A model generated the notes under the pieces. It saw only the letters and a program-made list of their open reading frames with translations. It was not told the DNA's origin and did no database searches. The position numbers and the translations under genes are program-made. A DNA stretch of 64,000 nucleotides from Pocillopora damicornis (taxonomy: Eukaryota): assembly GCF_003704095.1 (NCBI RefSeq), contig NW_020846062.1, positions 62,001 to 126,000 of the forward strand, read 5' to 3'. Shown piece after piece: positions 4,788 to 52,700 of this stretch; position 1 is the first letter of the stretch, and each line of letters starts with the position of its first letter.

Positions 4788-7700
4788 TCTCTAATAATAG
4801 TAATAATAATAATAATGATATCTCTCCTCTCCACACTTTAATATACTATTTATTGTATAATTTCTTTTTATTTCTCATAATACAACTGACGATGGATGAT
4901 ATTTCATCCGAAACATGTTTTGTTTTCATTAAAAAATTTAAAAAATGAACTTCAAAAGCGTCGTGNNNNNNNNNNNNNNNNNNNNNNNNNNNNNNNNNNN
5001 NNNNNNNNNNNNNNNNNNNNNNNNNNNNNNNNNNNNNNNNNNNNNNNNNNNNNNNNNNNNNNNNNNNNNNNNNNNNNNNNNNNNNNNNNNNNNNNNNNNN
5101 NNNNNNNNNNNNNNNNNNNNNNNNNNNNNNATGAAGTTGCAAAGTTTCACGCGGAAATGGAGTAACAAAGTGAAAGAATATTTTAAAGGCACTACATTAC
5201 GGTTTGTTTATCCTTAAAATTCAGCTTATCTTATTTTCACGCTCGTCAATTTCCATTTGCAATCCGTTTCAATCTTCTTCATCTTCAGCTTACCTACTTC
5301 TTTCAAGGTGTACTGCTGTCTCTTCTTTGTTCCTTATCTAACTGAACTAATACTTTGAAGTCACTGTAACGGCGCAAAAAATGTCCCATAGAATCTTACT
5401 TACAGAGGCCCCTTAGACTTCTAACTTTCTGTGAAAGCCTCACCTTTATCTTCTCAATCTCCTCCTGGATCTTTTCAGGCTCCGCTCCGAATGCACGCTG
5501 GGTATTCAGTTTGTCTTCAATTTTAGAAATCACTTCTGACAGGTTTTGTAAGGCATCATGGAAATCGTCCGCCAGAGGCGCAACATTTTCCAAGCTTCTC
5601 CGTCGGTCCGCGGTCCTATCCACGATGCTGCTCAAGGCTTCGGTCACGTGATTCACCTCTCTGGAAAGTTCCTCTTTGTCGCCAGGTTGCGCAGTTTCAA
5701 CCAGGACCTCGCTGACTTTGGTGAAGTTTTCAATGATTGGTGCTCGATCAGCGATTTCGTTTTCAATGTCCTACGAGAAAAAGGGAGGGATCTTTTTAAA
5801 AACTTGTGGTGTTTTTCTCACCTTAAAAATATTAGAAATTTTACATATGGAAATAAAAGGAATGAAAGTATTTCTATGCAGTTATCATTTCCCACGTAAG
5901 TGATTTAAGGATTCAGTGAAGTTAGACGCTAACAGGTAGAATTTTTATGAACAGATTAGAATCAAATGATCAATAACTGTGCATTTTGTTATTGCTCGTC
6001 CTAAAAGTTGTTTGTAATGAAAATATCAGATTGTAATCCTCATACTCGAAAAGGAATCCCGTTTTATGAACTTTTAAAAAGTTTAATTTTATCGTTGGTT
6101 ATGACTGTTACCCTCGTGAACGCGTTTAAAAATAAACACAGCCGAGTATCAGTCATTTAAACGCTACTATTAGATTCTCTCGTTAACAGCGACTGTATTT
6201 AATTCAGCTGCAAACAAATGAGGAAAGAAGTCGAAAAATAAATGAAATCTTGAAAATCACAGGTTCATATTAGATTTACAAAACTTTTACGAGTATGAGT
6301 TGGCTCAATAAGAAGATCAAGAAATGAATGATATTAGCTACGGTTAAAGCATATATGTAAAAAGGAAACTGATATAAACATGACAAACAAGATGTAACAG
6401 TAATAGAAAGGGATGTAAAGTGAAAATAATTTGTGATGTGAGAACAAAGTAAAAGATGAAGGTTGCACGAATACAAGCTGAAACCAAGTAAAAGAAATAA
6501 TTAGCTGCAAGGAAAAAAGTAAACATAGACGAAGCAAATACATGAAATGAGTAACTGAATTGAAAGTACGTGTAGCGGCAAGATCATAAACACGACTGCT
6601 AGAATTGGCCAGAAGTACGCGAGTAAGATGTGGAGGCTTCCTTAGAAGTGCACAGTGGAGGTATGATTCATCAGAAAACAATCACTACATAGCCGACATA
6701 CACTGATAACGGACAAAACAACAAGGTTATTACATATACATAAAACATCAGTATTAGATATGTGGTGCTAACATAACATGCAAATTGTGTAGTACATTAA
6801 TCAATTTTTGATCATCAATGGAATAGGACGCGTCAAATCACATTGCAGATACCTCAGAGTGAACTTTGAACTAACGCAACTACAGTGATAGATGGTGCGA
6901 TAAGCAAAAGGCATAGATGAACCAAGATAGCTTCAAATGAAGCCACAATTTACTTGCTCCTAATTTCATTTTTATCAAACGTCCATGCAAATTTTATTTT
7001 ATTAGCAATAAATAGGTTTTTATTACAGTCTATCTTGTTTACAGATTATCATATTTAGGATCGCATCTCAGTGTAGTTCCAAGTTTTTCCAAGGTTGACT
7101 TTCTCGTTACGCATGCAAGCAATGACAACAAATCTTGTTTAAAGAGGTTTAGCAGAGGTAGAGAGAAAAGAGCCAGAAATGGCCTCATGGCCGATATCCA
7201 CAAGCACCCTGCAAATTACTCGGCATACAATGTTCATGCAATTCCCATCATGCAAATCAACAAATATTCTGCGTGAGAGGAATACCTTGATTTCTTGCAA
7301 TTGCGTCTTGATTTCATCCACTTTCCACGAAACGGCCCTCATCCAGCTCAACTTTTTCAAAGTTGTGAGCATCCACTGCAGGAAATTCTCCAGAACAAAA
7401 TTAAACCGCATGTGTCTTGAGCTGTAGATGAAGATCAACGATTTGTGCTCCAATACATATTGATAAAGTGTTTCAATAACGACAAGGTAACGTTGTACGA
7501 CGGTTGTTTGGTATGGAATGGACACTCGCCGGGAAGATGTAAGCTCAGCTTGATTAAAGACAGCGGATTCAGGTGTGATTGTTTCCACAGTTTCAGTTTC
7601 CTCATATGGAACCACTTCCTCTACTGGCCTTTGCATTCCGATCGTCCCTTCAACACTTCCATGATGCACAGTTCTTGTCACTGTTCGTGTCACAACTCTT

Positions 7701-10700
7701 CTGATCCGTACACCGTGTTCGTCAACATACTCTTCAAATTCTTCTGGCGCGTCATGTTCTGTGTGGGATACAGGTAGCTCTATTGTTGTTGGTGCAACAT
7801 CTTCTGTCTCGAGATAAACAGGTGCCGCCGACTCAAATACCTTTGTACCCAAATCTTTTTTCTGTTCGTCGCCAGATTTACGTATTATACTTGTGGTTGT
7901 GACGGTGCGTCTCACACGAACACCATTTTCATCAACATATTCTTCAACTTCTTCTGGTGATTCACCTCCTGTTTGCGGTAAAGTAAGTCCAACCTCTATA
8001 GGTTCAATCTGTTGGCCTTTTCTTTTTATACTGGTTGTAGTGACAACACGTCTCACACTTCTCCTTACGCGAACTCCATTTTCATCAATATACTCCTCAA
8101 CTTCTTCTGGTGATTCATCTCCTGTTTGCGGTAAATAAAGTCCAACCTCTTCAGGTTCAATCTGCTGGCCTTCTCTATTTATACTGGTTGTAGTGACAAC
8201 ACGTCTCACACTTCTCCTTACGCGAACTCCANNNNNNNNNNNNNNNNNNNNNNNNNNNNNNNNNNNNNNNNNNNNNNNNNNNNNNNNNNNNNNNNNNNNN
8301 NNNNNNNNNNNNNNNNNNNNNNNNNNNNNNNTTTCATCGATATATTCTTCGACTTGTTCCGGTGATCCATCTCCTGTTTGCGCTATAGAAAACTCAACTT
8401 TCTCTGGTTCAAACTGCTGTCTCCTTATACCAGTTGTAGTAACATAACGTCTCACAATTCTCCTAACACGAACACCATTTTCATCGAGATATTCTTCAAC
8501 CTCCTCTGGTGACTCTTCCTCCGTTCTATCATCTGGTGAAGGGACCAAATCGTGATAGACAGGTGCCGCTGATTCAAACACTTGGGGTCCTCCGTCATCT
8601 TTATTTTCGTCAATCGCCTTTGGTGACTGGTCATCTGTTTTCGTTGGCAGTAAATTGGATTGTGGAATCTCCTCAAACGATGAACTCAACTCAGGAATTA
8701 TCACTTTTTTCTCGAAGTGCACAGAAAACACGTTTTCTTTAACTTCTGGCCTTTCTTCTGGCTCGCCTCTTTCATCCTCGTCTCCAACTTCCATTCCAGA
8801 CTCCGCAGGTAGTTTGGGTGACGGCATATCGGATTCTTCTTCCGACGGGAACGCAACGGTAACAGGTTGTAATGTTCCTTTCAACTGAGTCGTGAAAACT
8901 GATTTTCTGAGCTTCTGTGTGCGACGACCAGCATCGGAGGCAATCATCACTATCTGTTCTCCTTCCTCGGGATCTTCTCTAAGCTTGGAATCATCGACAT
9001 CATCAGGTTTCAGGACAACCTTCATTGATCCATCTCGCAGCACTGTTTTCATTGTAGTGGTATGAGAAGTGCGCATTACTCTTGTTATCCGTTGTCCGTG
9101 CTCGTCTGTGTACTCCTGTACCTCTTCTTTTGGCTCAGGAGGGATATCGACATCCATTTCCAAGTCGGGCATCTGACGTTCTACTCGTAGTATTGTCTTG
9201 GTGGTCGTTAATTTAGCAATTCTCTTTACCTGACGTCCGTCTTCATCAACGTATTCCTCGATGACTTCTTCATCAGGATCATCACTTTTATCTACCGAAC
9301 TCTGCAATGAAATACTTACCTCGCCTGGTTCCTCTTCCAAGTAAACAGGTTGTGCTGATTCAAACACGACCGTCTCCCCATCGTTGTCCTCGTAATCTTC
9401 TTCGTCAGAAGAGGCGCCAAGAAGAGGCCTTCCCCATTCAAATTCTTCCTGTTTAGTCTCTGGTCTAGATTTACTTGGGACTTCAAAGTTTAAACTTTCA
9501 ACGGTGCCCATTTCGACGGCTGTAACTCCAAAGGGAGACTTATCTTCCACTCTCCCATCACTATCAGAACTTTTTGCCACTGGTTTCCCTAATTCAAACG
9601 GTCTGGGTGAAAGGAGTACGTTAGTTCTTTCAGCAGCAGGTTCCGTTTTCCCAGATTTAGGAACTTCAAATGTATCAAGGAGATTCTTTTTGACTGTGGT
9701 GACCTTAAAGGGACGGGAAGAATCGCTCTCTGTTGGAGATTCATCATCCTAAAGATACAATGAAATACCGTGCGGGTCAATTAACTCCAAAGATGATAAA
9801 GCTACTTCGCTCAACTGATGGAGATATCTCTTTAATGACCGGCTAGTCAGGTGACCTAATGGTCACATCCAATTAATTGATGATGGTGTAAATTCTCACT
9901 GCCTGGCTGTTTGACAAACTATCAAACTTGTGAAGAGAATTTATGCCTCAATGATCACTTCAAGTCGTGAAAAGTCGATAAATTGTGAAGAAACTCTGCT
10001 ACATCCAATATTTTTATACTTTTTCCAATGTGTCCTTTAATTTCCGTCGCGATAGGTAAATAAAATTGCCTCTTCAGATTTAATTTGCATACAAAACTGA
10101 ATACAAATTAGCCCCACGACAACCTAGAAAAATTTCGCAAAGTTTAATAATAGGCCATTCAAATATGTGGATAAGCTGTTGATTGCTAAAAATTAAGTCT
10201 CATTAAGGTTTCAATTGTCCTCAAATACTGCATCTCAGATCAGTCCTCACAAGCAATTAGAATACAGCCGCGGGGCCAAAGCGACGCGTAGCAAACACAT
10301 GGAAGTGATAATTGTCCACATCTTTTCGCAGTTTTTCATGGGCAATACAGACGGAGTTGATTTGATGCTGTACATACATTACCTAACTATCAATATTACA
10401 CTGCGAAATATTACTACCATCAACATATTAAAAATTGGAAGTTCTCAGATATGTATCGCTTCTAATAGACCGAACAATATAGTTTTTCGAACAGTCTACT
10501 CACAACTACAGAGGTGATGGTAAATCAGTCGTAATAAATAGAATACTGGCAATTAAGAGACAGAAACTAGTACATTTTTTCCTGAATACGACATCACCTG
10601 ATCCTTGCCGCACTATAATTTGTGCATTGTTTGGGTTAGTGATATTAGCACTCGCACATACAAATTTCATTAACTCGCGTGTTCAAAATACAAACCAAGA

Positions 10701-31700: not shown

Positions 31701-34700
31701 TGATCTTCACTTGCGTAAAAACTTGTTCTTTGCTTAGGGCTTGCTTTAAATTCCAGTGTCTTGTTCTCCACAATGTCAGTAAATGTTTATACTGAATTTC
31801 TAACCTGGTGAAATAGAAAAAAATAATACTGTAACAGTACTGGAGAAAAACCTATCTTTAAAGGCTGCCAAAAGTGATAAATGAGATTGAATTATTGATA
31901 TTTTATTCGTCTGTTTTAATTAAATTGTGATATATTTTTTTATAATTTCTTCTCAGACAATTTGTACAGACCACCATCAGGTTGATACAGAAATATTTCT
32001 TTCTACAGGTCAAATTCTTGGTTAGTCAGAAGGTAATATTTTCTGATCCAACACAAAGAGTCCACATGAATGAATGTGGCTGTGACCATAACCTTTCTAT
32101 ATTTTACATCTCAATACAAGACGCTCTTCCTTACCAAACAGAGCACATGCAAAATCCAAGTTTTTCTATGTTGAAGGTTAAAATATGTGACCATTACCTG
32201 GTGGAAAATTCTGTAGCTTCCACATCTGGAGCAGGAATAACAAAACATACGGATGGAACTTCACACTGTCTACTGCTGGCATTTGTAATCTGTCAAAGAG
32301 TACAACAATTTTCATTAAAAAAAGAACAGATATGGTGATCCATCTGTTTTTATCTACATGCCTTATTTGTCTTGTCTGTCTGTCTATTCAGGGTAGTCAT
32401 TAGAAAATGTAAAAGATGCACAATCTGAACTAAGTAGACAGCTGAATTGAATTCTGCTTGCCAAGCATTTGCATTGCACCTTTCTTTGAGGGGTTGAGGG
32501 GCATGCTCCACATTTTTTAGCAAGACATTGATGTTGCAATCAGTAAAATTTACTTCTTTTCAGTTTTTATCCAAATTCACAAGGTAGCCAGCAGGTTTTT
32601 GCCTCTGACCGCCTTCTAATGACAATCCTGCTGCCTGTACATCTGTCTGTGAACAATGTGTCCCTCTTGTTTATTTACCTGTTGATCATTGATTGTTTGT
32701 TGGTTTCTCTTACTGTCTACATACTTTGATTGTTGATTAGTCAGCCACACAGCTTGTATGTGTTTTACTGTTTGTATGTTGGTTCTCAGAAGATCTTGAT
32801 CACTGCTTTAGATTTAACTCAAAGTAGTTATTTCAGCAATAATACATACTTTCCAAGAATGATGCTCAGAATTATCCAGGAGTAGACATTCTTCACCTTT
32901 GTTGACAACATTCTGAAAAGCAAATTAAATAGCACACCATGTGTTAATAATAGGCCATCTAATGGCAAAAGAAATCCCAAATTTCTAACAAAATCAAGTT
33001 TATCACCAAATAGTAAGTGTTTGAGAAAAATACTTAATAACCCAGCTGTGTAGAACTTAGGCTAGGAACTTCAAACAGAAGTCACAAATTCCAATCACTG
33101 CATCAAAAAGTGCCCGCCATTCTTACCTGCATATTCTTGTAACTGCACACTGGATCAACCAAAACTTTGCCCTTCAATTTGGATTTTCTTTGTGGCAGGG
33201 GAACTACCTTTTTACTCAGAAGTTGCAATGAGCTAACAACATCTTTGAAGTCAACAAGTTCTTGCTTCATTTCCTACAAGAAATTTTAAAATAACTTTAC
33301 ATTTAATAAAGACCTAAGGAAACCCTGAGGAAAATAAAAAAAAATTGAAGGATCTTAGCACAATCAATTTGCATGGTAACTTGTTGCATAAAACATGACA
33401 ATACTGTCACATTTTGGAACATGCTATAGAATCCTGTGATCAATGAGTTGTCACAGGCAAAGTTGACTGAAGAGGTATACCTCTGCTTTGAGTAGGATTT
33501 TCCAGTTGAGACACCTGTATTAAATTAGTACCTTACATTTAAGGGCACACCAGGTTATTTTGTCATTAAGATTGTCACTTTGTCTGGACAACTGAGGAGG
33601 TTATAGACTTAGAACCTTCATAGCAGGACCCCTTCTCTAGTAGTAGTAGTAGCTCGTCAAAATACAACCAACATGTAAAATATTCTGCAATACCATTCAC
33701 CAAAATGTCTAATGAGTTTTTCTTTTTTAATCATTCAATTAATTTACTTCATATGTATTTCTCCTAAGATAGGGAGAGCAAAGCAATAGAGAAGTGAATT
33801 GTAGTCCTAATATTTGTACTTGATTTACACATTCTTTGTACTCTTAATTAAACAGTTGGCTAATAAAAGCTTATCGTAAAAATAGGCTAAACAGTGTAGA
33901 TATCTTAGGTGGAATTTAATTCTCAGAACCAGCATTACAAGTGAAAAGATAAAAGGTAAAATCACTCGGGATCAGATAAAACTGCAAGGAAAAATACTAA
34001 CAAAGAAATACTGAGGTGAATGTGTGAGATTAAGGCAAGAAAAGCAATAAATCAGTTATTGACAGACAACAAACTAGGGCCAGTAATAAGGGGACTGGAT
34101 TATATTGCTGATTGTCATCTATGGCACTCCACCCCCTCAGTCATTAATCTGACATGATCAAATATTCTTATATGATCAAACATTCTTGTATGATCAAATA
34201 TTCTGGAGTGATCAAATATTCTGGTATGATCAAATATTCTGATGAAAGCTAACATGTGGAAAGAAATCTGATAAAACTTGGTTATGTTAAAAGTGCAAAA
34301 GGAAAAGCTGTTCTTCTACTTATAAGATAACATAACATTCTTTGAGGAATTATCTTCAAAATGACAATAGGTAATATAATAATTGAGCAGAACTTTCTTA
34401 CTGCAGAACTTTCTTACTGCAGAACTTTCTTACTGCAGAACTTTCTTATTGCAGAACTTTCTTATTGCAGAACTTTCTTATTGCAGAACTTTCCTTTTGA
34501 AGTCATGCCTGATTAACTTTTGATATACAGAGGAAACATATGCCTGATGAAACATGAACAGAAGGTAGGAGGAGGGAATGATTGAGATGCTGACACTCTT
34601 GTTCAAGTCTGACACCATCTGTAATCCACTATTATCATAATTGTCAGTGATCATGCATATTGTGCACAGTTAACCCTTTGAGAGTGACTAGTATTTAATT

Positions 34701-37700
34701 TAGCCCCACAATATTGTTCTGCATCACATCAAATTAAAGTCAAAAGAGTAAACAAGATGATCAACACTGGAGGAAGCTCTTCATTGTTGAAAAAATTCTC
34801 CTAAACAGCACCTCGGGAAATGCTAAGAGAAATGTTCCTGAGGAGAAGTATATTGATGTAAGGATGTAAAGGGTCAAATGGCTGAGTGATTGCCATCAAA
34901 GGCTCTATCTGTAAGTATATGGTCTAAAGCATCATTAAAGAACCAGTAATATTATGTGCAGAATTCATTGTCTAAAGAAATGTTTCAGAATCAACCTAAC
35001 AGTAGTCTACACAAATTGTTGGCGAGAAATTATAAAAAAAATGTAAATTTGTGTGTTAACTATCACAGTTTGATTAAAACAAACAAATAAGATATCAATA
35101 CCAACCCTCTTCATTATGTTGATTTTCAAAAAGATATGCTATAAAAATATCAAATGCATAGTAGTGCACTTTGAAAGAAAGATTTACTAACAGTGTCCAC
35201 CTTAGGAAAACTTAGGCAGTAATTTTAGTGGATGACAGTGAAGTATTGAGACCATCTTCAAAAATATCACCTGGGCTTGTGTTTCCTTATCATTATGAAT
35301 AGAAATTTTGTTGTGGTTAAACCTAGTATTAGCTTGGTAAATTTCCAAACCAGTTATATTTATAATACTTCCACAACTTTGTAATAGTAATATATTTAAC
35401 TCATGCTGACATCTGATGCAAAACTTTTATGTGATGTGTACAACAAAGTCAACAGCTACAGCATAGTAAACAGATGATAGCACAAGTCATGCCAAAACAA
35501 CTCTTTAAAAAGTTTCCTTGTGAATTTGAAGTTTACTTTGTTTTCATCTATATTTTCAATTTATTTTGATACAGCAAACAATGGAAATTTTATTCATACT
35601 GGTGGCATGTCTAAACATTTCACACCAGAAATATGCATTTAAACTGAAATATATTTATTCCTTGGAAATTTCTTTAACCAACTGTAAACATTCAGGAAAG
35701 AAGAGGCATGATATTTATAACAAAATTTTTGCTTACCAACAGCACAAGTTTTGAGCTTAATTGTATTTTGCCATAATTAAATAATTTGAATAGACATACA
35801 CTATAATCCTCTGTGAAGGTCAAATTTTCTCAAAGAATATAGCTGTAAGTTAATCGGAGAGTGAAATAACGAAAGAAATAAAACTTAAAGATCTGTAAAC
35901 AAGACAGAGAAGTGAAGCGCATGATTCTCCCTTGAACTAGGCTTAAAAAAATGAAAGCTTCTTCGTGAGTATGACTCTTGCCAAATATTGACACAAATTC
36001 AACATTTATTTGACTTGTAACTTAATACCGCTTGCGGCTCTAGCAACGTCGACCTCGATCCCCTGAAGCTTCACCGCATGAAATTAACAACAGGCGAAAA
36101 TTGATCACGCGAGACATGTCGGGGTTTTTTTTTGTTTAAAAATAACCAGCTGTGGAAAACTACCAAACACAACTCCATAAATTTGTCTTGCAAATGGGCC
36201 AATTTACTTTCAGAACACTTCGTCAGACCGATATCAAGTATTTAAAAATTCCGCTCGAACAACATTTTCGAGTTAAAAGATCGAGAGATAAAGAAAAAAA
36301 AAAAAGCTGTCGGAAACTGGAGTCAGACATAAGCACACTATTCTAGAATGCAAATTAAGCACAGTGTTTGTCGCTAATATTAGTTCATTCGCCACGTTTC
36401 GACCTGTTCAAAACACTTAAAACAGTCTTTTTGGATGAACATCTTGGAAAACTGTTTACCTGCTTAAGTTGAAGCATGTCCGTAACGACGTCTTTAAACT
36501 TTGGCTCTAGATCCTTCTCACTTTCCGTCTTTGGTCCGCGCAGAAGCAACAAATAACGTTCTCTGGGTGCAGAAACACTTCTTTCTTCGATCTTTCGATC
36601 GAAAATATCGCGAATATATTCCAAAGAGTATGCGATAATCGTTCCCATTTGTGACTGTCTGACAACCGGGAAGTTTTCCAATGGAATTCCCGCCTGGACT
36701 GCCTGCTCCGAGGCAGGGAGAACTCTTTCTCTTAAAAACCTTTGCCAGCGAGAGTCGTGAATTAATTGATCGTGATCGAAGATCGGCTGCTGTGAAGTTC
36801 GCCATCTCACTACAGTAGCCGCGCTGTGTAGTGCTCGTCTGCATGCAAAATAAACACGAGTGCAAGAGCCCTTTATCATTTGAGTTACGAAAGAGACTGG
36901 ATGAAGAAGATTATGGAAAGATGCTCGCGACAAGCGCGCTGTTCTTATGGGAACCGCTGCAGATCTTCGTCCATGTAATTTGTTTTCGTTCCTTGATCGG
37001 TAAATGAAGTACAAAAGTGAAATTAACGCCACGAAAGCGACAGCCGCCGATGTAAATAAAATGAACAGGAGAAGTGGTATGGGATTCCAATGCAAAACTA
37101 CGCACATTTCTTAACTTTCGCGACGGCTAGCTTGCCAGGACTGTTTTGATAAAGAAATTAAGCCGTCTAGCACTTTCGGCATCTGTTTCGTCTAAAGCTT
37201 CGTCGTTGTCGTTTGCATATAAGTCATTGTTCGGAAAGACGGCTGGATCTGACGTTTGAGAAGCGTGCCTTTGCACGTGTAAACTGAACCTGCGTGGATC
37301 CAATTCATCAGTCACGAGTTCTCACTCCACAAATCAATCCGTCAGTTGCACTAATTAACTCTTAAAAAAATCAGTGGACAAGTGTTCCCAGTGATAGACG
37401 TCAATTCCCTCTGTACAATCAATACGCTTCCTGTTCTGGTTATGCAAGTGGACCTTGGAGCAATAACTTCCAAACAACTATTTCCACACTCGACAGGAAA
37501 TCCGATACGCGCGCGTAAAGTTCGAAACCAGACACTCACAAAGAGAGACAAATTTTGAATTTTAATTATCGAAATTAAATATTAATAACTTTAATGCTAA
37601 ACTACTCGCAATTTGTTTTTAATATCAGATTTCAATAGAGACCGGAAAGGATGTAAATAAACACCGAGAGCATTTTAAAATACCGCGAAGTAACGTCAGA

Positions 37701-40700
37701 GTAAGCAAGAATTACCGTGATATTGCGTGAAAATCATCTGGTCGACTTGCAAAAGTTTTTGGAAATAAAATATATTTTCTAAAAAGCCTATTATGCAATT
37801 TCTCGTAAATCGAATATACATGAGCAGCAAACAGCTAAGAAATGCACCACAGTTAAAATGGAAAAGGATAAAGGCTTTGTTTATCATGCAAATAGATAGT
37901 TCACAGTAGTTACTAAGAATACTAACCAACAATCAAATTTCGTAAGTCACTTGTTTAAACACCAGTGGACCTTTACGAAGACAAAAGCTATTCTAATGCA
38001 ACAGTTTTGTCCTTCTGTTACCGCCACGTCAGATGTGACCAACAGCACTTAAGCTAGAGACTTCTAGGTATTGTTAACCACCTGTCAACTTATAAATTCC
38101 AGACCAGCAAATCATCTTTTTCCAATAATAGAGTGTATTCTAGAGGGTTTTTGTTTTTCCATCTATGCCCACGTTCTTCGCGGGATATACTATTCTTTCA
38201 ACTGGTGCCGGAAATTATATGCAAATACTACGATATCAAAAATAGAACCAACGAGTTCCCTTTTACGATCATTTTGTGATTACAGATACTATAAGCATTC
38301 GCACAGAGCATGCTGGATGCAAGATACTACGATAGCGGTTTTAACGTGCGCGCTCTCTTTGGTGGATATGCGTGTTTGAAAGAAAGTAGTTGAGCACGGT
38401 TTACCGCTGTCACAGGTTCTCCCAGCCCACCTCGTGTTTAGATGGCGCTATATAAACACGGGAAAAATCCCCTTTACTCTGATAATTCGCTTGCTAAAGA
38501 AATCAGAGGAAGGTTTATAAAACCAACTATAGAAAATAATTAATGCAAAATGCAATCTGCATAATTGTCTGTGAAGATGGGTGGAAGGCGGACTCAGGGT
38601 GTAATAATTTTAATTGCTGTCTTGGAACAAAAAGTTGCGGTTGGCCATAGTGATGAACACATTTATTAGTGAAGTATGATCGTTTTTCTCACGAGCCACT
38701 CATTTTGATTCTATGAACTTTTTACTGGTAACAGAAAATGAACTGACCATTTTATTTCCTTACTGATTCTTTGCACACCCCACGATTGTCAAGACCCCAT
38801 TCAGACAATCAATTTCCTTATCAACTTGATTATTTTACCCCTCCATAGCTTCTTTAACAATTTTAAAAAAAACCTGAAGGTCTCCTGTTTTCGTAGCTTC
38901 CAGATTGTAACTAGAGTACGGGAGAGTATTACAGGATTTATTTCTTGATGAATCGTCAGTCAGGACTAAGTTGTAAGACAGATGGAGCGTCTCCCGTCAA
39001 GCGAGACTACATCCCAGTTGCTTTAGTCGCTGCTCGCGGTTAGAATGCCCAGAAAAAGAGACGAACGCAAATCGAATTGTTGTTTCTTTTTCTTGCCTAG
39101 CATGCCAGGTAAGAGAAAATTCGAGTCAGGCACGCGGAGGAAAGATACAGGCCGAATCCAAATGCAACATTTTTTTGATGTAGATATAGCTGACTCCGCC
39201 TCTGGGCATAGAGAGTGTTCTGATTAGCTACCCAAGCGAGGCATGTGAATATCTTGCTATATTCACCACACGCCGAGTCAATAACACATGGAAACCTGGG
39301 CTGTTTATTAACAACTCACCGTCAGATTATTCAGAGCTTGCTCGGCTGCGTCACGTGACGATATGTTTTGTACGTCATATTCACTGTTCAGTCGATCGAT
39401 CAACTGAATCATCTTTTTCTCTGTGGTATGTGCGTCTTGGAAATACTACACGCAATCAAGTAAAAGGAAAAGCAGGAAACTTAAGATGCATTTAAACCGT
39501 TTCAAAACTGATCCATGTCAGTATCTGATTAACTGCGCACCTACCGCTCCCTTATTCCCAAAATAATCAACTGATAACAAGTCAGGGTTCTTGTTGGATT
39601 AGGGGAGGGGTAGGTGCGCAGTTGCAGAGATACTGAACCGAAAGAATATAGATCAAGCAAAACGTGAGGAAAAGTAACGGAATGTTGTCAGTTTACTCTC
39701 GATAAGAATGCAAGATCTCACAAGGCTGGAAGAAACTAACATCAGAGGTTGAACAGATTATTATGGTAAAGAATAAACCACACCTGTTGGTACATCTCTG
39801 CATTTCTCACGTGCTGTTGGAAGGCGACGAGAAGTTGGGTAAGCCACCACCACTGACTGCGCATAGCATTCAGGTACGCCTGCATGGAAAAGATATCAGC
39901 CGAACACTCTCGTTACTAGATTTTTGAGCCGTTGTTTAGTTATCGTGATATATTTCCTCTGAATCGAAAACAACACAATGGCGAACGTGCTGGATTCCGG
40001 ATCGAGAGGTCTAGGCGCACGAAATAATCAGGTCGCTGCGTTATGTTCTTAGGCAAGACTCTTTGCATCCAAAGCAGGGAGCTCCTTCCGGGAATATGAT
40101 GTGTCTACGAATAAACTCAGAGAAAGCTGACGAAATTTTTGGGGGTAACCAGGGAAAAGACCATCATTCCATTCGGGGAAGAAGCAAACTCCGGCAGGGA
40201 TAAGTAGCTCCGTTCATGTTCGAACCTTCTCACAAATATTTGCCCCCACACCTTTCCACCTCATCACCCTAAAACGCTGAATTGTAAATTGCTAAACATT
40301 CAATTCTCTAGAAAAAAGTACGCTAATCACCGCTATTCTTTCACGTCACAGGGCCACCAGTGACGATCCCCGTCTTTTCTCTTAATGAATCTCACCTCTA
40401 TTGGTTCTGGCGCAGGGTGCCCACTCTGCACCAGGTTCTCTCCTTTAGTAAGCAGCATATTGTAGTGAGGTTCTCTGTCTCGAACATCAAATTCAAGATT
40501 CTAAGGGCATAAAAAATTTTACAAGTTTAACCCTTGAACTCCCAAGATCTGATTATTTTCATCCCCTATAGCTGTTACACATTTCCTGGTAAATTAGTTA
40601 GGAGAATTTGGCATTAGATCAAGATAAGAACCTCTCAGTAATAAGTTTGAGTATTCTCATTACTTTTTTGCTGGATGATGTATGATTACTATAAGGAGAA

Positions 40701-49700: not shown

Positions 49701-52700
49701 CTGGGGAGAAACACTTGATCTCCTCAACTCCTACTACTTTGCTGCACACCATAACAAAAGAAAAGTCTCTTCAGTAAAAGTCGTGAACAAAAACATACAA
49801 ATGCTGAGTTTTGTTCCCCTCTATTTCCTTTGTGTTATTATTTACTTTTTTCCCCCAACATAAATGGTTGTAAATCAAAGGAAAGATGCTTAGTTGATAG
49901 TAAATGCACAAATTAACTTTTCCTCCAAACCTTTATTCCATGGATAGTCTTTGGGAATCTCTGTTTCTCCATTTTTTGCTCCACTTTGTTGATCTCCACA
50001 ACTAGAGCTTTTGCCAAGTTACAATATTCTTCAAACTTGAAAAGCTTTTCCTGAATATAGATAAATCACAGGAAATGAAATTTGACTCAAATAAAGAATA
50101 GATTAAAGCAAAAATACTTAAATGGTCAGCTTCGTTCATTTTTTCGGGTTCAAATCCATAAAAAAAATTAATAAGAAATTGAGAGAGAACTCGACATCAC
50201 ATTAACAAGGATGCTTACATTATCCTGCAATGACTCTTGTACTGTTGGCTCTTTTGGAAATACTTCATACAAGGAAGATACATATGTCATGATAGATTTT
50301 TCATCTGGTTGTTCGGTATTTGCGAGATCTAGAACAGAAATCATAACAGGTTCACAGTCATGCATACAGAAATTTACTTACAATGCATTCATATCCATAC
50401 GGTGTGCAATATTTAACGTAAAAGTTTAAGTTAAGTTTTTTCCCTTGCCCAGGAAAATACCCATTTGCTAGTTACCACAATCCATTCTGACAATTTGACA
50501 CAATTCATGTGGATGGACAAGTGAAGACAATAGCTCAATCTAACTATCTTCCAGTATCTTATCAGGATTTACCAGCAGTTCTCTGTTATCTCTTTATACT
50601 CCTGAGCTAAGGTGATCAGAGCATTGTTATCACTTACCCAAAGTTATGTGCGGCACTATGCAGCTTACCCTGAATTAGTGATGATTTAGTTTTAAACAAC
50701 TAAACTGAGAAGAACACAAGGAAAGTTCAGATCACAATGCTCTAGCCAGAACTCAAGCCCAGAGCTTTCATTCCCACAAATCCAACCAGCAATTCCCACC
50801 AATTCATCCAGCAAACTTCTCCAGCAACTGGTGCTTAACAACAATTCTGAGTGGTTGACCTTCCTGATAGCAAATTGAACCTGAACATTTAGTGATTTAT
50901 TTTACCTTCCACATCTAAGAGTCTTGGAACACCAAGTTCTTTCTCAGCCACATGAAATGAATACTCCAGGTTTTGATCAGGGCTTGCTTTATTCAACTTG
51001 GAGAAGTCTACAAGATCTGGCCTGTTGTTGGAAAAAACAATCACAATTCCATGATATTTCTATTAAAGACCATAAATTCACAAATCACATTTGACTGAAA
51101 TTTATGTGCCTGACAAAAATCAAACTAAACCCTCTTTGTTACACAAATTAAAACATTTAAGATACCTGTATCTGTGAATAATTGCATTGAAAGCCAGCCC
51201 ATCTCTCCATGAAGTTGTAAAGTTTCCAACATCAACTGAAGGATAACTGAAAACAGAAAGAAACACAATATATTCTTTTCACTTTGCTTCTCAGCAGCAT
51301 TTTAAGCTCAGCATCATAGAAAATGTTTTAGGGAAAGTTACATGTTTATCACTTCTGGGAGTTAAAGGATTAAGTAAAAGCAAGCAATTTGTATGATGCA
51401 CAGAATAACAATGGAAACTGAATGGCAGTTGCTCTTTTTCAGCTCATGATAACTAACTAGTTGGAAAAGGAATTTGTGTTTTAAGGAACAATAATGGAGC
51501 ATAGTAAAGCCAAATCAGTCTGTGAAATCCCACTTTGGACACTTAACCCTTTAACTCCCAGAAGTGATTCACATGCAATTTCTCCCTTCAATATCCATCC
51601 ACTATTCAGGAAACAGGTAATGAGAGTAATCAAATGTATTAGATAGAAGTTGTTATCTTGATCTAACACCAAATTCTTGCAACCAATTGACAATGAAACG
51701 GGAAGCAGCTAGAGGGGAGAATTAATAATCAGATCTTGGGAGTTAAAGGGTTAATTGCAAACTGCTCTTATCATCTCAGCACTTACCCCTGAGTTACTTT
51801 CTTTGCCCACAGAAGAAGAGCATCTTTAGCTGTCATCTGCTCCTGTTTTCCCACAACTTCCACCTCTGAAATCTGTAATTATACCATTACATAACAATAA
51901 TTGTAAAGAAACATGGACATACATGCATTTAGTCTGGAACTGGACTGAAATATAATTTTTCTGCTAAGATGTTCAAAAGAATCCTACAAGCTATCAACAA
52001 AGTAAGGGAAGCTTACTTTTTCAAGAGGCAATGGAACAGTTTTATTTTGAAACCAGTCAGAATTATTCAAATTTATTTACCTATTTAAGAATTAACAGAC
52101 ATAAAATAAATACATGGTTTATTGTCTGACCTGGTAGTGTAAGATAATTGTCCATATCAGACCCAGGGTAAGCTTGGGATTACCATCCACTATGTCCTCA
52201 CTACGAATGTTCACCAGTTTCACCTGAAACAAAATATTCGTTAGCTTAAGCTTTGTAGGACATGAGGGGTAACATTGGGTAAAGAAATCTTTCAAACCTG
52301 TTACTCCCTAACATCAGTATGCATATTCTCTATGCTGTTATATATCAATTTCCTAAGGTTCTGACAAGGAGAATTTGTTTAACTATCACAAGCTTCTTTT
52401 TTCCGGTGATCATTCCCTTTATTCTAATAAACTTGATGTGTGATTCAGGGGTGATATTATAAAGAGAACCTACAATAGATTTTTGCTACTCTTCAGGATC
52501 AAAGGGTTAGGAAACTTGCAGGAAAGATTGAGGTGTTCATGAAAACTGTGGTTTAGTTGGAGCTCAGTTTCAAACTAAGCAGGCAGATGCAGATCCATGC
52601 AATGTAGTTGAACAAACACACATCTTGTTTTAAGAATATATAGGCTGATTTACAGGGAGAAAATCATCCTCAAGACTTATGATTATAATTAATCCTCAAG

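Follow-up and report, generated by a model that had tools for sequence, protein, structure and literature searches.

A conserved alternative first exon with a predicted membrane anchor inside the plakin-coding part of a coral spectraplakin gene

The 64,000-nucleotide stretch of the Pocillopora damicornis genome analysed here, hereafter the window (assembly GCF_003704095.1, contig NW_020846062.1, positions 62,001 to 126,000 of the forward strand), carries on its minus strand part of a gene that most likely encodes a true spectraplakin. A 216-codon frame at 36460-37107, in the intron just upstream of the exons for the plakin SH3 domain, is a real, conserved coding exon, which is transcribed, is joined to the first SH3 exon in an RNA contig and opens with the sequence features of a membrane anchor. 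This exon is probably the first exon of a transcript driven by an internal promoter and spliced in frame, giving rise in anthozoans to a membrane-anchored spectraplakin isoform that lacks the actin-binding head.

A conserved and transcribed exon upstream of the SH3 exons

The exon is located in a 6,046-base intron of the host gene (33274-39319), between the exon coding for helix A of the fifth plakin spectrin repeat (SR5; 39320-39445, ending in ACG/gtgagt in phase 0) and the first SH3 exon (33127-33273), which starts tag/GAA with a whole codon. The minus-strand open reading frame (ORF), 36385..37107, comprises 240 codons from an ATG at 37107-37105 in a gaaATG context, with an in-frame TAA two codons 5' of this ATG, while the donor CAG/gtaaac at 36460/36459 (GT at 36459-36458) follows codon 216 in phase 0. 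The initial annotation had reported this sense-strand frame of 216 codons in a 6-kb intron, and its coordinates, start context, donor and phase are all correct. In 300 shuffles of the intron the longest ATG-initiated ORF reached 145 codons, against the 240 observed, and the exon is present as a single copy in this genome, with no paralogue there. The relevant features of the window are:

36460-37107, minus strand: alternative first coding exon of 216 codons, ending in phase 0 (ORF, conservation, dN/dS, RNA contig)
37000-37083, minus strand: putative transmembrane signal-anchor segment, residues 9-36 (hydropathy, flank charges, AlphaFold helix)
36460-36750, minus strand: conserved, putatively cytoplasmic module, residues ~120-216, predicted beta-beta-alpha-beta-alpha (invariant motifs, AlphaFold2)
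36458-36459, minus strand: GT splice donor of the alternative exon, CAG/GTAAAC (GT conservation and the joint in run X1)
37108-37871, minus strand: transcribed leader 5' of the ATG (contigs of runs X1, X9 and X5)
37552-37620, minus strand: short conserved non-coding block that may act as promoter or leader element (78% identical to locus L003 across 72 bases)
33127-33273, minus strand: acceptor exon, SR5 helix B and first plakin SH3 strand (Pfam SH3_10 positions 1-24; joints)
32850-32912, minus strand: second SH3 exon (SH3_10 positions 28-46, 24.8 bits; joints 32912/33127 and 32289/32850 in X1 and X9)
32199-32289, minus strand: third SH3 exon, 3' boundary approximate (SH3_10 positions 48-65; joint 32289/32850)
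39320-39445, minus strand: canonical upstream exon (SR5 helix A), skipped by the alternative start (weak Spectrin_3 match; conserved in L001-L004)

A word-based protein search identified 28 homologues of the exon, sharing 41-99% amino acid identity and stemming from Logan, ENA and JGI assemblies. In their alignment, conservation extends from the initiator methionine (M-C-V invariant) to F-K-D-V-V-T-D-M-L-x-[LF]-K-Q and stops sharply thereafter. The codon following the conserved glutamine is a valine codon (GTN) in every homologue that reads through, or else the model is spliced at this glutamine; this fits the GT donor, which was seen directly in the window, in the five hexacoral loci checked (L001-L005, 5/5) and in the octocoral Xenia. 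Beyond the donor the read-through tails are unlike one another, the shortest having 3 codons and others more than 100. A profile search of 1.84 billion representative sequences yielded 14 matches, all short, including a more distant, octocoral-type group whose members end in RQ or HQ followed by V (GTN), or are spliced there, and one of which is a Xenia RefSeq protein. The homologues total thirty-odd, from stony corals, hexacoral relatives and soft corals, and neither the word-based nor the profile protein search found the exon outside Anthozoa, although such searches cannot prove absence. Four motifs (FP..R, AYS, RY.L.L and F..V..D.L..Q) are invariant across the hexacoral and octocoral copies. 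The ratio of nonsynonymous to synonymous substitution rates (dN/dS) is 0.13-0.27 in five species pairs with unsaturated dS, and is lower, at about 0.09-0.15, in the C-terminal two-thirds of the exon.

Nucleotide similarity to three other genomes covers only the interval from the ATG to four bases past the donor (island 37107-36456), as it is for the neighbouring constitutive exons, and the same comparison showed no other conserved block between the alternative exon and the SH3 exon. The only conserved intron stretch outside the exon is 37552-37620, shared with L003. This block is A/T-rich and lies ~450-510 bases 5' of the ATG, and may be a promoter or leader element.

The exon also occupies the same intron, strand and phase 0 in six other genomes or scaffolds. 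Four hexacoral assemblies (L001-L004) carry, on one strand, the helix-A exon, the alternative exon (50% to 78% identical to that of the window) and SH3 exons a, b and c, with the GT donor and the whole-codon boundaries (phase 0) kept. A marine metagenome scaffold (L006) contains a copy 1.9 kb 5' of SH3 exons that look nearest to those of Xenia. In Xenia sp. (GCA_021976095.1) the copy is found 550 bases 5' of the SH3 exon, within a gene model whose domains are CH, SH3_10 and Spectrin, and is annotated as a separate gene (L008:10001-10965, 'uncharacterized protein LOC124451677'). The presence of the arrangement in both the hexacoral loci and Xenia suggests that it predates the Hexacorallia/Octocorallia split. 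The Xenia annotation (L008:3089-20965) also divides the spectraplakin around this copy between two gene models; one has 1,363 amino acids with CH, SH3_10 and Spectrin domains, and the other at least 4,168 amino acids with Spectrin domains.

Evidence for transcription is derived from assembled contigs of runs X1, X5, X9 and X15, placed at 90% likeness. In X1, a polyA metatranscriptome, a 1,413-base contig covers 36459-37871 with 0 differences at a depth of 31 and stops exactly at the donor; for comparison, depth is 43 on the constitutive-exon contig and 0-11 over most of the intron. X1 also contains a joint 33272->36459 (cut +1 = 33273/36460) with a depth of 13.6, whose CT..AC ends on the plus strand correspond to GT..AG on the gene strand. 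The canonical junction is represented in X1 by a 28-letter loose end at 33274, the reverse complement of which is the end of exon 39320-39445, and in X9 by the same loose end of 52 letters. Run X15 covers all bins evenly, as DNA would, and is free of joints, and so gives no sign of the joined form in DNA. The splice from 36460 to 33273 had been predicted in the initial annotation and is seen in RNA here; the check that it had proposed on related species, conservation in the same intron with dN/dS below 1, also came out in its favour.

At the 5' end, the X1 contig reaches 37871, those of X9 reach 37607-37898 and that of X5 reaches 37485, so that transcription probably starts within about 37.5-37.9 kb, the contigs being unable to fix the 5' end. 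The long leader (37108-37871) contains several ATGs ahead of the main one, as well as short ORFs such as that of 62 codons at 37127-37315. The main ORF may be subject to translational regulation.

Some further observations concern the intron itself. An X1 contig just 3' of the donor (35546-36444) differs from the window at 24 positions and by 8 gaps, and many of these changes recur in the X5 contig; its divergence next to an exon contig with 0 differences suggests that two haplotypes or closely related corals are present in the metatranscriptome. A tandem repeat at 34118-34315 encodes repeated R-I-F-D-H units in one frame, and an X1 contig skips 48 bases (34386->34435) with non-canonical ends, which looks like a length polymorphism rather than splicing.

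Predicted membrane anchor and C-terminal module

The first eight residues encoded by the exon are uncharged, residues 9-36 are hydrophobic and the next 15 residues have a net charge of +4. The Kyte-Doolittle 19-residue maximum of the anchor is 2.6, compared to 2.3-3.0 in 13 homologues. All 13 have a single N-terminal hydrophobic segment of at least 20 residues with a positive C-terminal side, the pattern of a reverse signal-anchor, with charges of 0 to -3 in the N-flank and +2 to +6 in the C-flank, and this charge pattern holds even in octocoral copies with an unrelated anchor sequence. According to the positive-inside rule, a basic C-flank places the C-terminus in the cytosol, where a cytoskeletal linker must be. 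The exon is accordingly predicted to open with a reverse signal-anchor of N-out/C-in orientation, because the basic C-flank is conserved and this rule applies. A cleaved signal peptide is unlikely, because the hydrophobic core is 27 residues long and there is no basic N-region. AlphaFold models the anchor confidently as a helix (predicted local distance difference test, pLDDT, 87-92), while the exon as a whole is otherwise poorly modelled (mean pLDDT 54.5), and the linker following the anchor is basic and poorly conserved. The hydrophobic opening followed by basic residues, and the charge bias favouring an N-out/C-cytosolic topology, were both described in the initial annotation and are upheld here, the latter in every homologue examined.

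The best conserved part of the exon is a region of ~95 residues (~120-216) that abuts the junction. Modelled alone with AlphaFold2, this module has a mean pLDDT of 62.8, a core of 75-79 and a predicted template modelling score (pTM) of 0.52, and its predicted fold begins with two short strands and proceeds through a helix and a further strand to a long helix ending at the splice site. Comparisons with known families gave little: Pfam returned only noise on the ORF (AMA-1 and Hemotin, E 0.09-0.7), with no repeat or transposon family match, the ESM Atlas only a cluster of P450 fragments with a low score (0.76), a profile search against PDB sequences 0 matches, and a Foldseek search of the module model against the PDB nothing with E <= 0.001. 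Duplication of the canonical SR5 helix-A exon was rejected as a source (hhalign probability 0.13%), and FKDVV, a string that the alternative exon has in common with the exon that follows, is taken to be fortuitous.

The module may stand in for the fourth spectrin repeat (SR4) and for helix A of SR5, and in this way may cover the SH3 domain again. Completion or capping of the truncated SR5-SH3 unit by the module appears more likely than a bare SH3 domain, because its final helix would run on into SR5 helix B. The initial annotation had read the exon as the start of a membrane-anchored isoform with a constitutively exposed SH3 domain. This reading is supported in part: what holds is a conserved, expressed first exon with a predicted transmembrane opening in a host gene that is most likely a true spectraplakin. 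The module at the junction had been overlooked, and neither the constitutive exposure of the SH3 domain nor the presumed direct link from membrane to microtubules is supported.

The host gene and the likely product of the exon

Pfam matches to the CH domain (PF00307) occur on exons 50892-51059 (E 2.5e-4) and 50171-50377 (E 0.011), two exon-sized pieces that fall short of the cut-off for whole proteins, and the orthologous Xenia model also carries a CH domain. In the exon-by-exon search the plakin SH3 domain (SH3_10) is split over three consecutive exons, with a weak Spectrin_3 match on the preceding exon, and two exons of the rod have weak Spectrin matches. A GAS2/GAR domain match (PF02187, 67.6 bits) at G000:C2697:7508-7627 shares contig and strand (minus) with the gene and lies ~55 kb past the low-coordinate end of the window, which would give the gene a span of ~110 kb, provided that both belong to a single transcription unit. 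The occurrence of CH, three-exon SH3 and GAR matches on the same contig and strand suggests that the host gene is most likely a true spectraplakin gene of about 110 kb. The division of this domain among exons is also why a six-frame search of the whole genome with SH3_10 gave no match. The window further contains two runs of N, at 4966-5130 (165 bases) and 8232-8331 (100 bases).

In the interpretation considered probable here, a promoter within the plakin-domain region would drive a transcript whose alternative first exon is spliced in frame to the exon of SR5 helix B and the start of SH3. Missing from this isoform would be the CH head that binds actin, the spectrin repeats of the plakin domain ahead of SR5, and helix A of SR5 itself. 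Its new N-terminus would consist of a short non-cytosolic tail, a single transmembrane signal-anchor with its C-side in the cytosol, a variable basic linker and the alpha/beta module, the last helix of which would run on into SR5 helix B. The anchor would presumably insert at the endoplasmic reticulum during translation, the module would take over from SR4 and helix A in capping the shortened SR5-SH3 unit, and a transcript running through the rod to the GAR domain would yield a protein that ties a membrane to microtubules without actin. This fuller picture, of an integral-membrane anthozoan spectraplakin without head or SR4, in which the module is fused to SR5 helix B-SH3 and continues through the rod to GAR as a membrane-microtubule tether, the SR4 autoinhibition of SH3 being removed or replaced by another partner, is put forward only tentatively.

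Several observations weigh against a spliced, anchored isoform. The junction 36460->33273 is represented by one contig from one run, with a short side of 28 letters at a minimum likeness of 90, and joints with a short side of less than 30 letters are flagged as doubtful by the read-placement method. Contigs built of 31-letter words should reach at most ~30 letters past a branch point, and 28 letters are what would be expected of a genuine alternative junction, fitting the equal length of the canonical loose end in X1. Contigs also cross the donor unspliced in X5 (35713-37485) and X9 (36373-37607), and unspliced RNA therefore exists, which contigs cannot assign to pre-mRNA or to a separate message. 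In Xenia, the NCBI model LOC124451677 is a separate protein of 159 residues made from the same conserved donor, using an acceptor at L008:10957, 140 bases before that of the SH3 exon (L008:11097), and stopping after two codons. Finally, the protein searches returned no spliced or giant protein with the exon, only read-through ORFs. This evidence is weak because the word-based search covered only proteins of 132-420 and 184-585 residues, the library of representatives is clustered at 50% identity, and unitig-style contigs break at splice branch points.

The unspliced contigs, together with the lack of depth on constitutive exons in X5, the Xenia model that ends two codons past the conserved donor, and the fact that every database protein with the exon is a short read-through ORF, would all be explained by a small nested gene. 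Such a gene would encode a single-pass membrane protein of ~160-240 residues, either unspliced or with a short terminal exon, and the SH3 junction would be a minor by-product. This is nevertheless rather unlikely. Conservation ends exactly at a conserved GT, past which the tails are dissimilar; no second conserved exon occurs before the SH3 exon; and phase 0 and the position just 5' of the SH3 exon have been kept from stony to soft corals. The spliced depth in X1 (13.6) is of the same order as that of the unspliced continuation (11.5), and read-through is to be expected of the database ORFs, which were called by programs without an intron model. The large anchored isoform and a small product may also both be made. 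It is a good deal less probable that an intronic promoter yields mainly non-productive or regulatory transcripts, with a peptide that has no function of its own. The long leader (about 400-760 bases) with its several upstream ATGs and the common unspliced forms would suit such a role, but not the strong purifying selection on the protein, the residues invariant between hexacorals and octocorals, or a transmembrane topology signal that is kept where the sequence is not. That the frame is open by chance or is left over from a mobile element, for which only the intron location speaks, is excluded by the conservation data: the frame is syntenic, under purifying selection and single copy, exceeds the longest frame in the shuffles and matches no repeat or transposon family.

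Comparison with known spectraplakin isoforms and anchors

Spectraplakins are known to vary among isoforms at the N-terminus, isoforms generated from alternative promoters included, and the predicted plakin-internal, membrane-anchored start in corals would add to these. One close parallel is dystonin-a2 (BPAG1a2), in which an N-terminal transmembrane domain precedes an intact actin-binding domain (PMC3352950; 10.1101/122010), although its membrane localisation is disputed (10.1101/122010). In dystonin-a2, as predicted for the coral isoform, an isoform-specific first exon provides a giant cytolinker with an N-terminal transmembrane segment. Unlike BPAG1a2, which keeps the actin-binding and the whole plakin domain, the coral exon joins at 33273 within SR5, skipping both CH exons and the earlier repeats. 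No sequence kinship to dystonin was evident from the profile search, the matches of which were anthozoan only, no direct alignment to dystonin having been made. The actin-binding head is likewise removed by alternative starts in BPAG1e, MACF1c and Shot type D (10.1101/122010; PMC3352950), the last of which probably lacks the plakin domain too (10.1101/122010). These isoforms, according to the reviews, start before or outside the plakin domain and have no membrane anchor, while the predicted coral isoform starts inside the plakin domain. The described N-terminal starts of spectraplakins precede or remove the plakin domain, the disputed anchor of dystonin-a2 is the one membrane anchor reported among them, and no description of an isoform starting inside it just before the SH3 domain, nor of the module, was found in the open-access literature.

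The short uncharged N-terminus, single hydrophobic segment and subsequent basic residues also resemble type III anchors, such as that of microsomal cytochrome P450. This resemblance is in the kind of signal only and not one of homology, the insertion of the coral anchor being predicted from sequence.

Genome annotations appear to miss the exon or, as in Xenia, to call it a separate gene, which bears on how 'orphan' genes nested within introns should be read. If the proposed isoform is real, Hexacorallia and Octocorallia have a start inside the plakin domain, a membrane-bound, actin-independent spectraplakin form would be old and selected, and the exon would define a new protein module. In plectin-type proteins the repeat before the SH3 domain hides its binding face, which force may set free (PMC5601466). 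As in the SR4-SR5-SH3 unit of plectin, desmoplakin and VAB-10, the coral SH3 domain is inserted in SR5. Unlike these proteins, however, the coral isoform would lack the preceding repeat and carry an unrelated conserved module in its place, and would therefore provide a natural test of the SH3 domain as a force-released switch.

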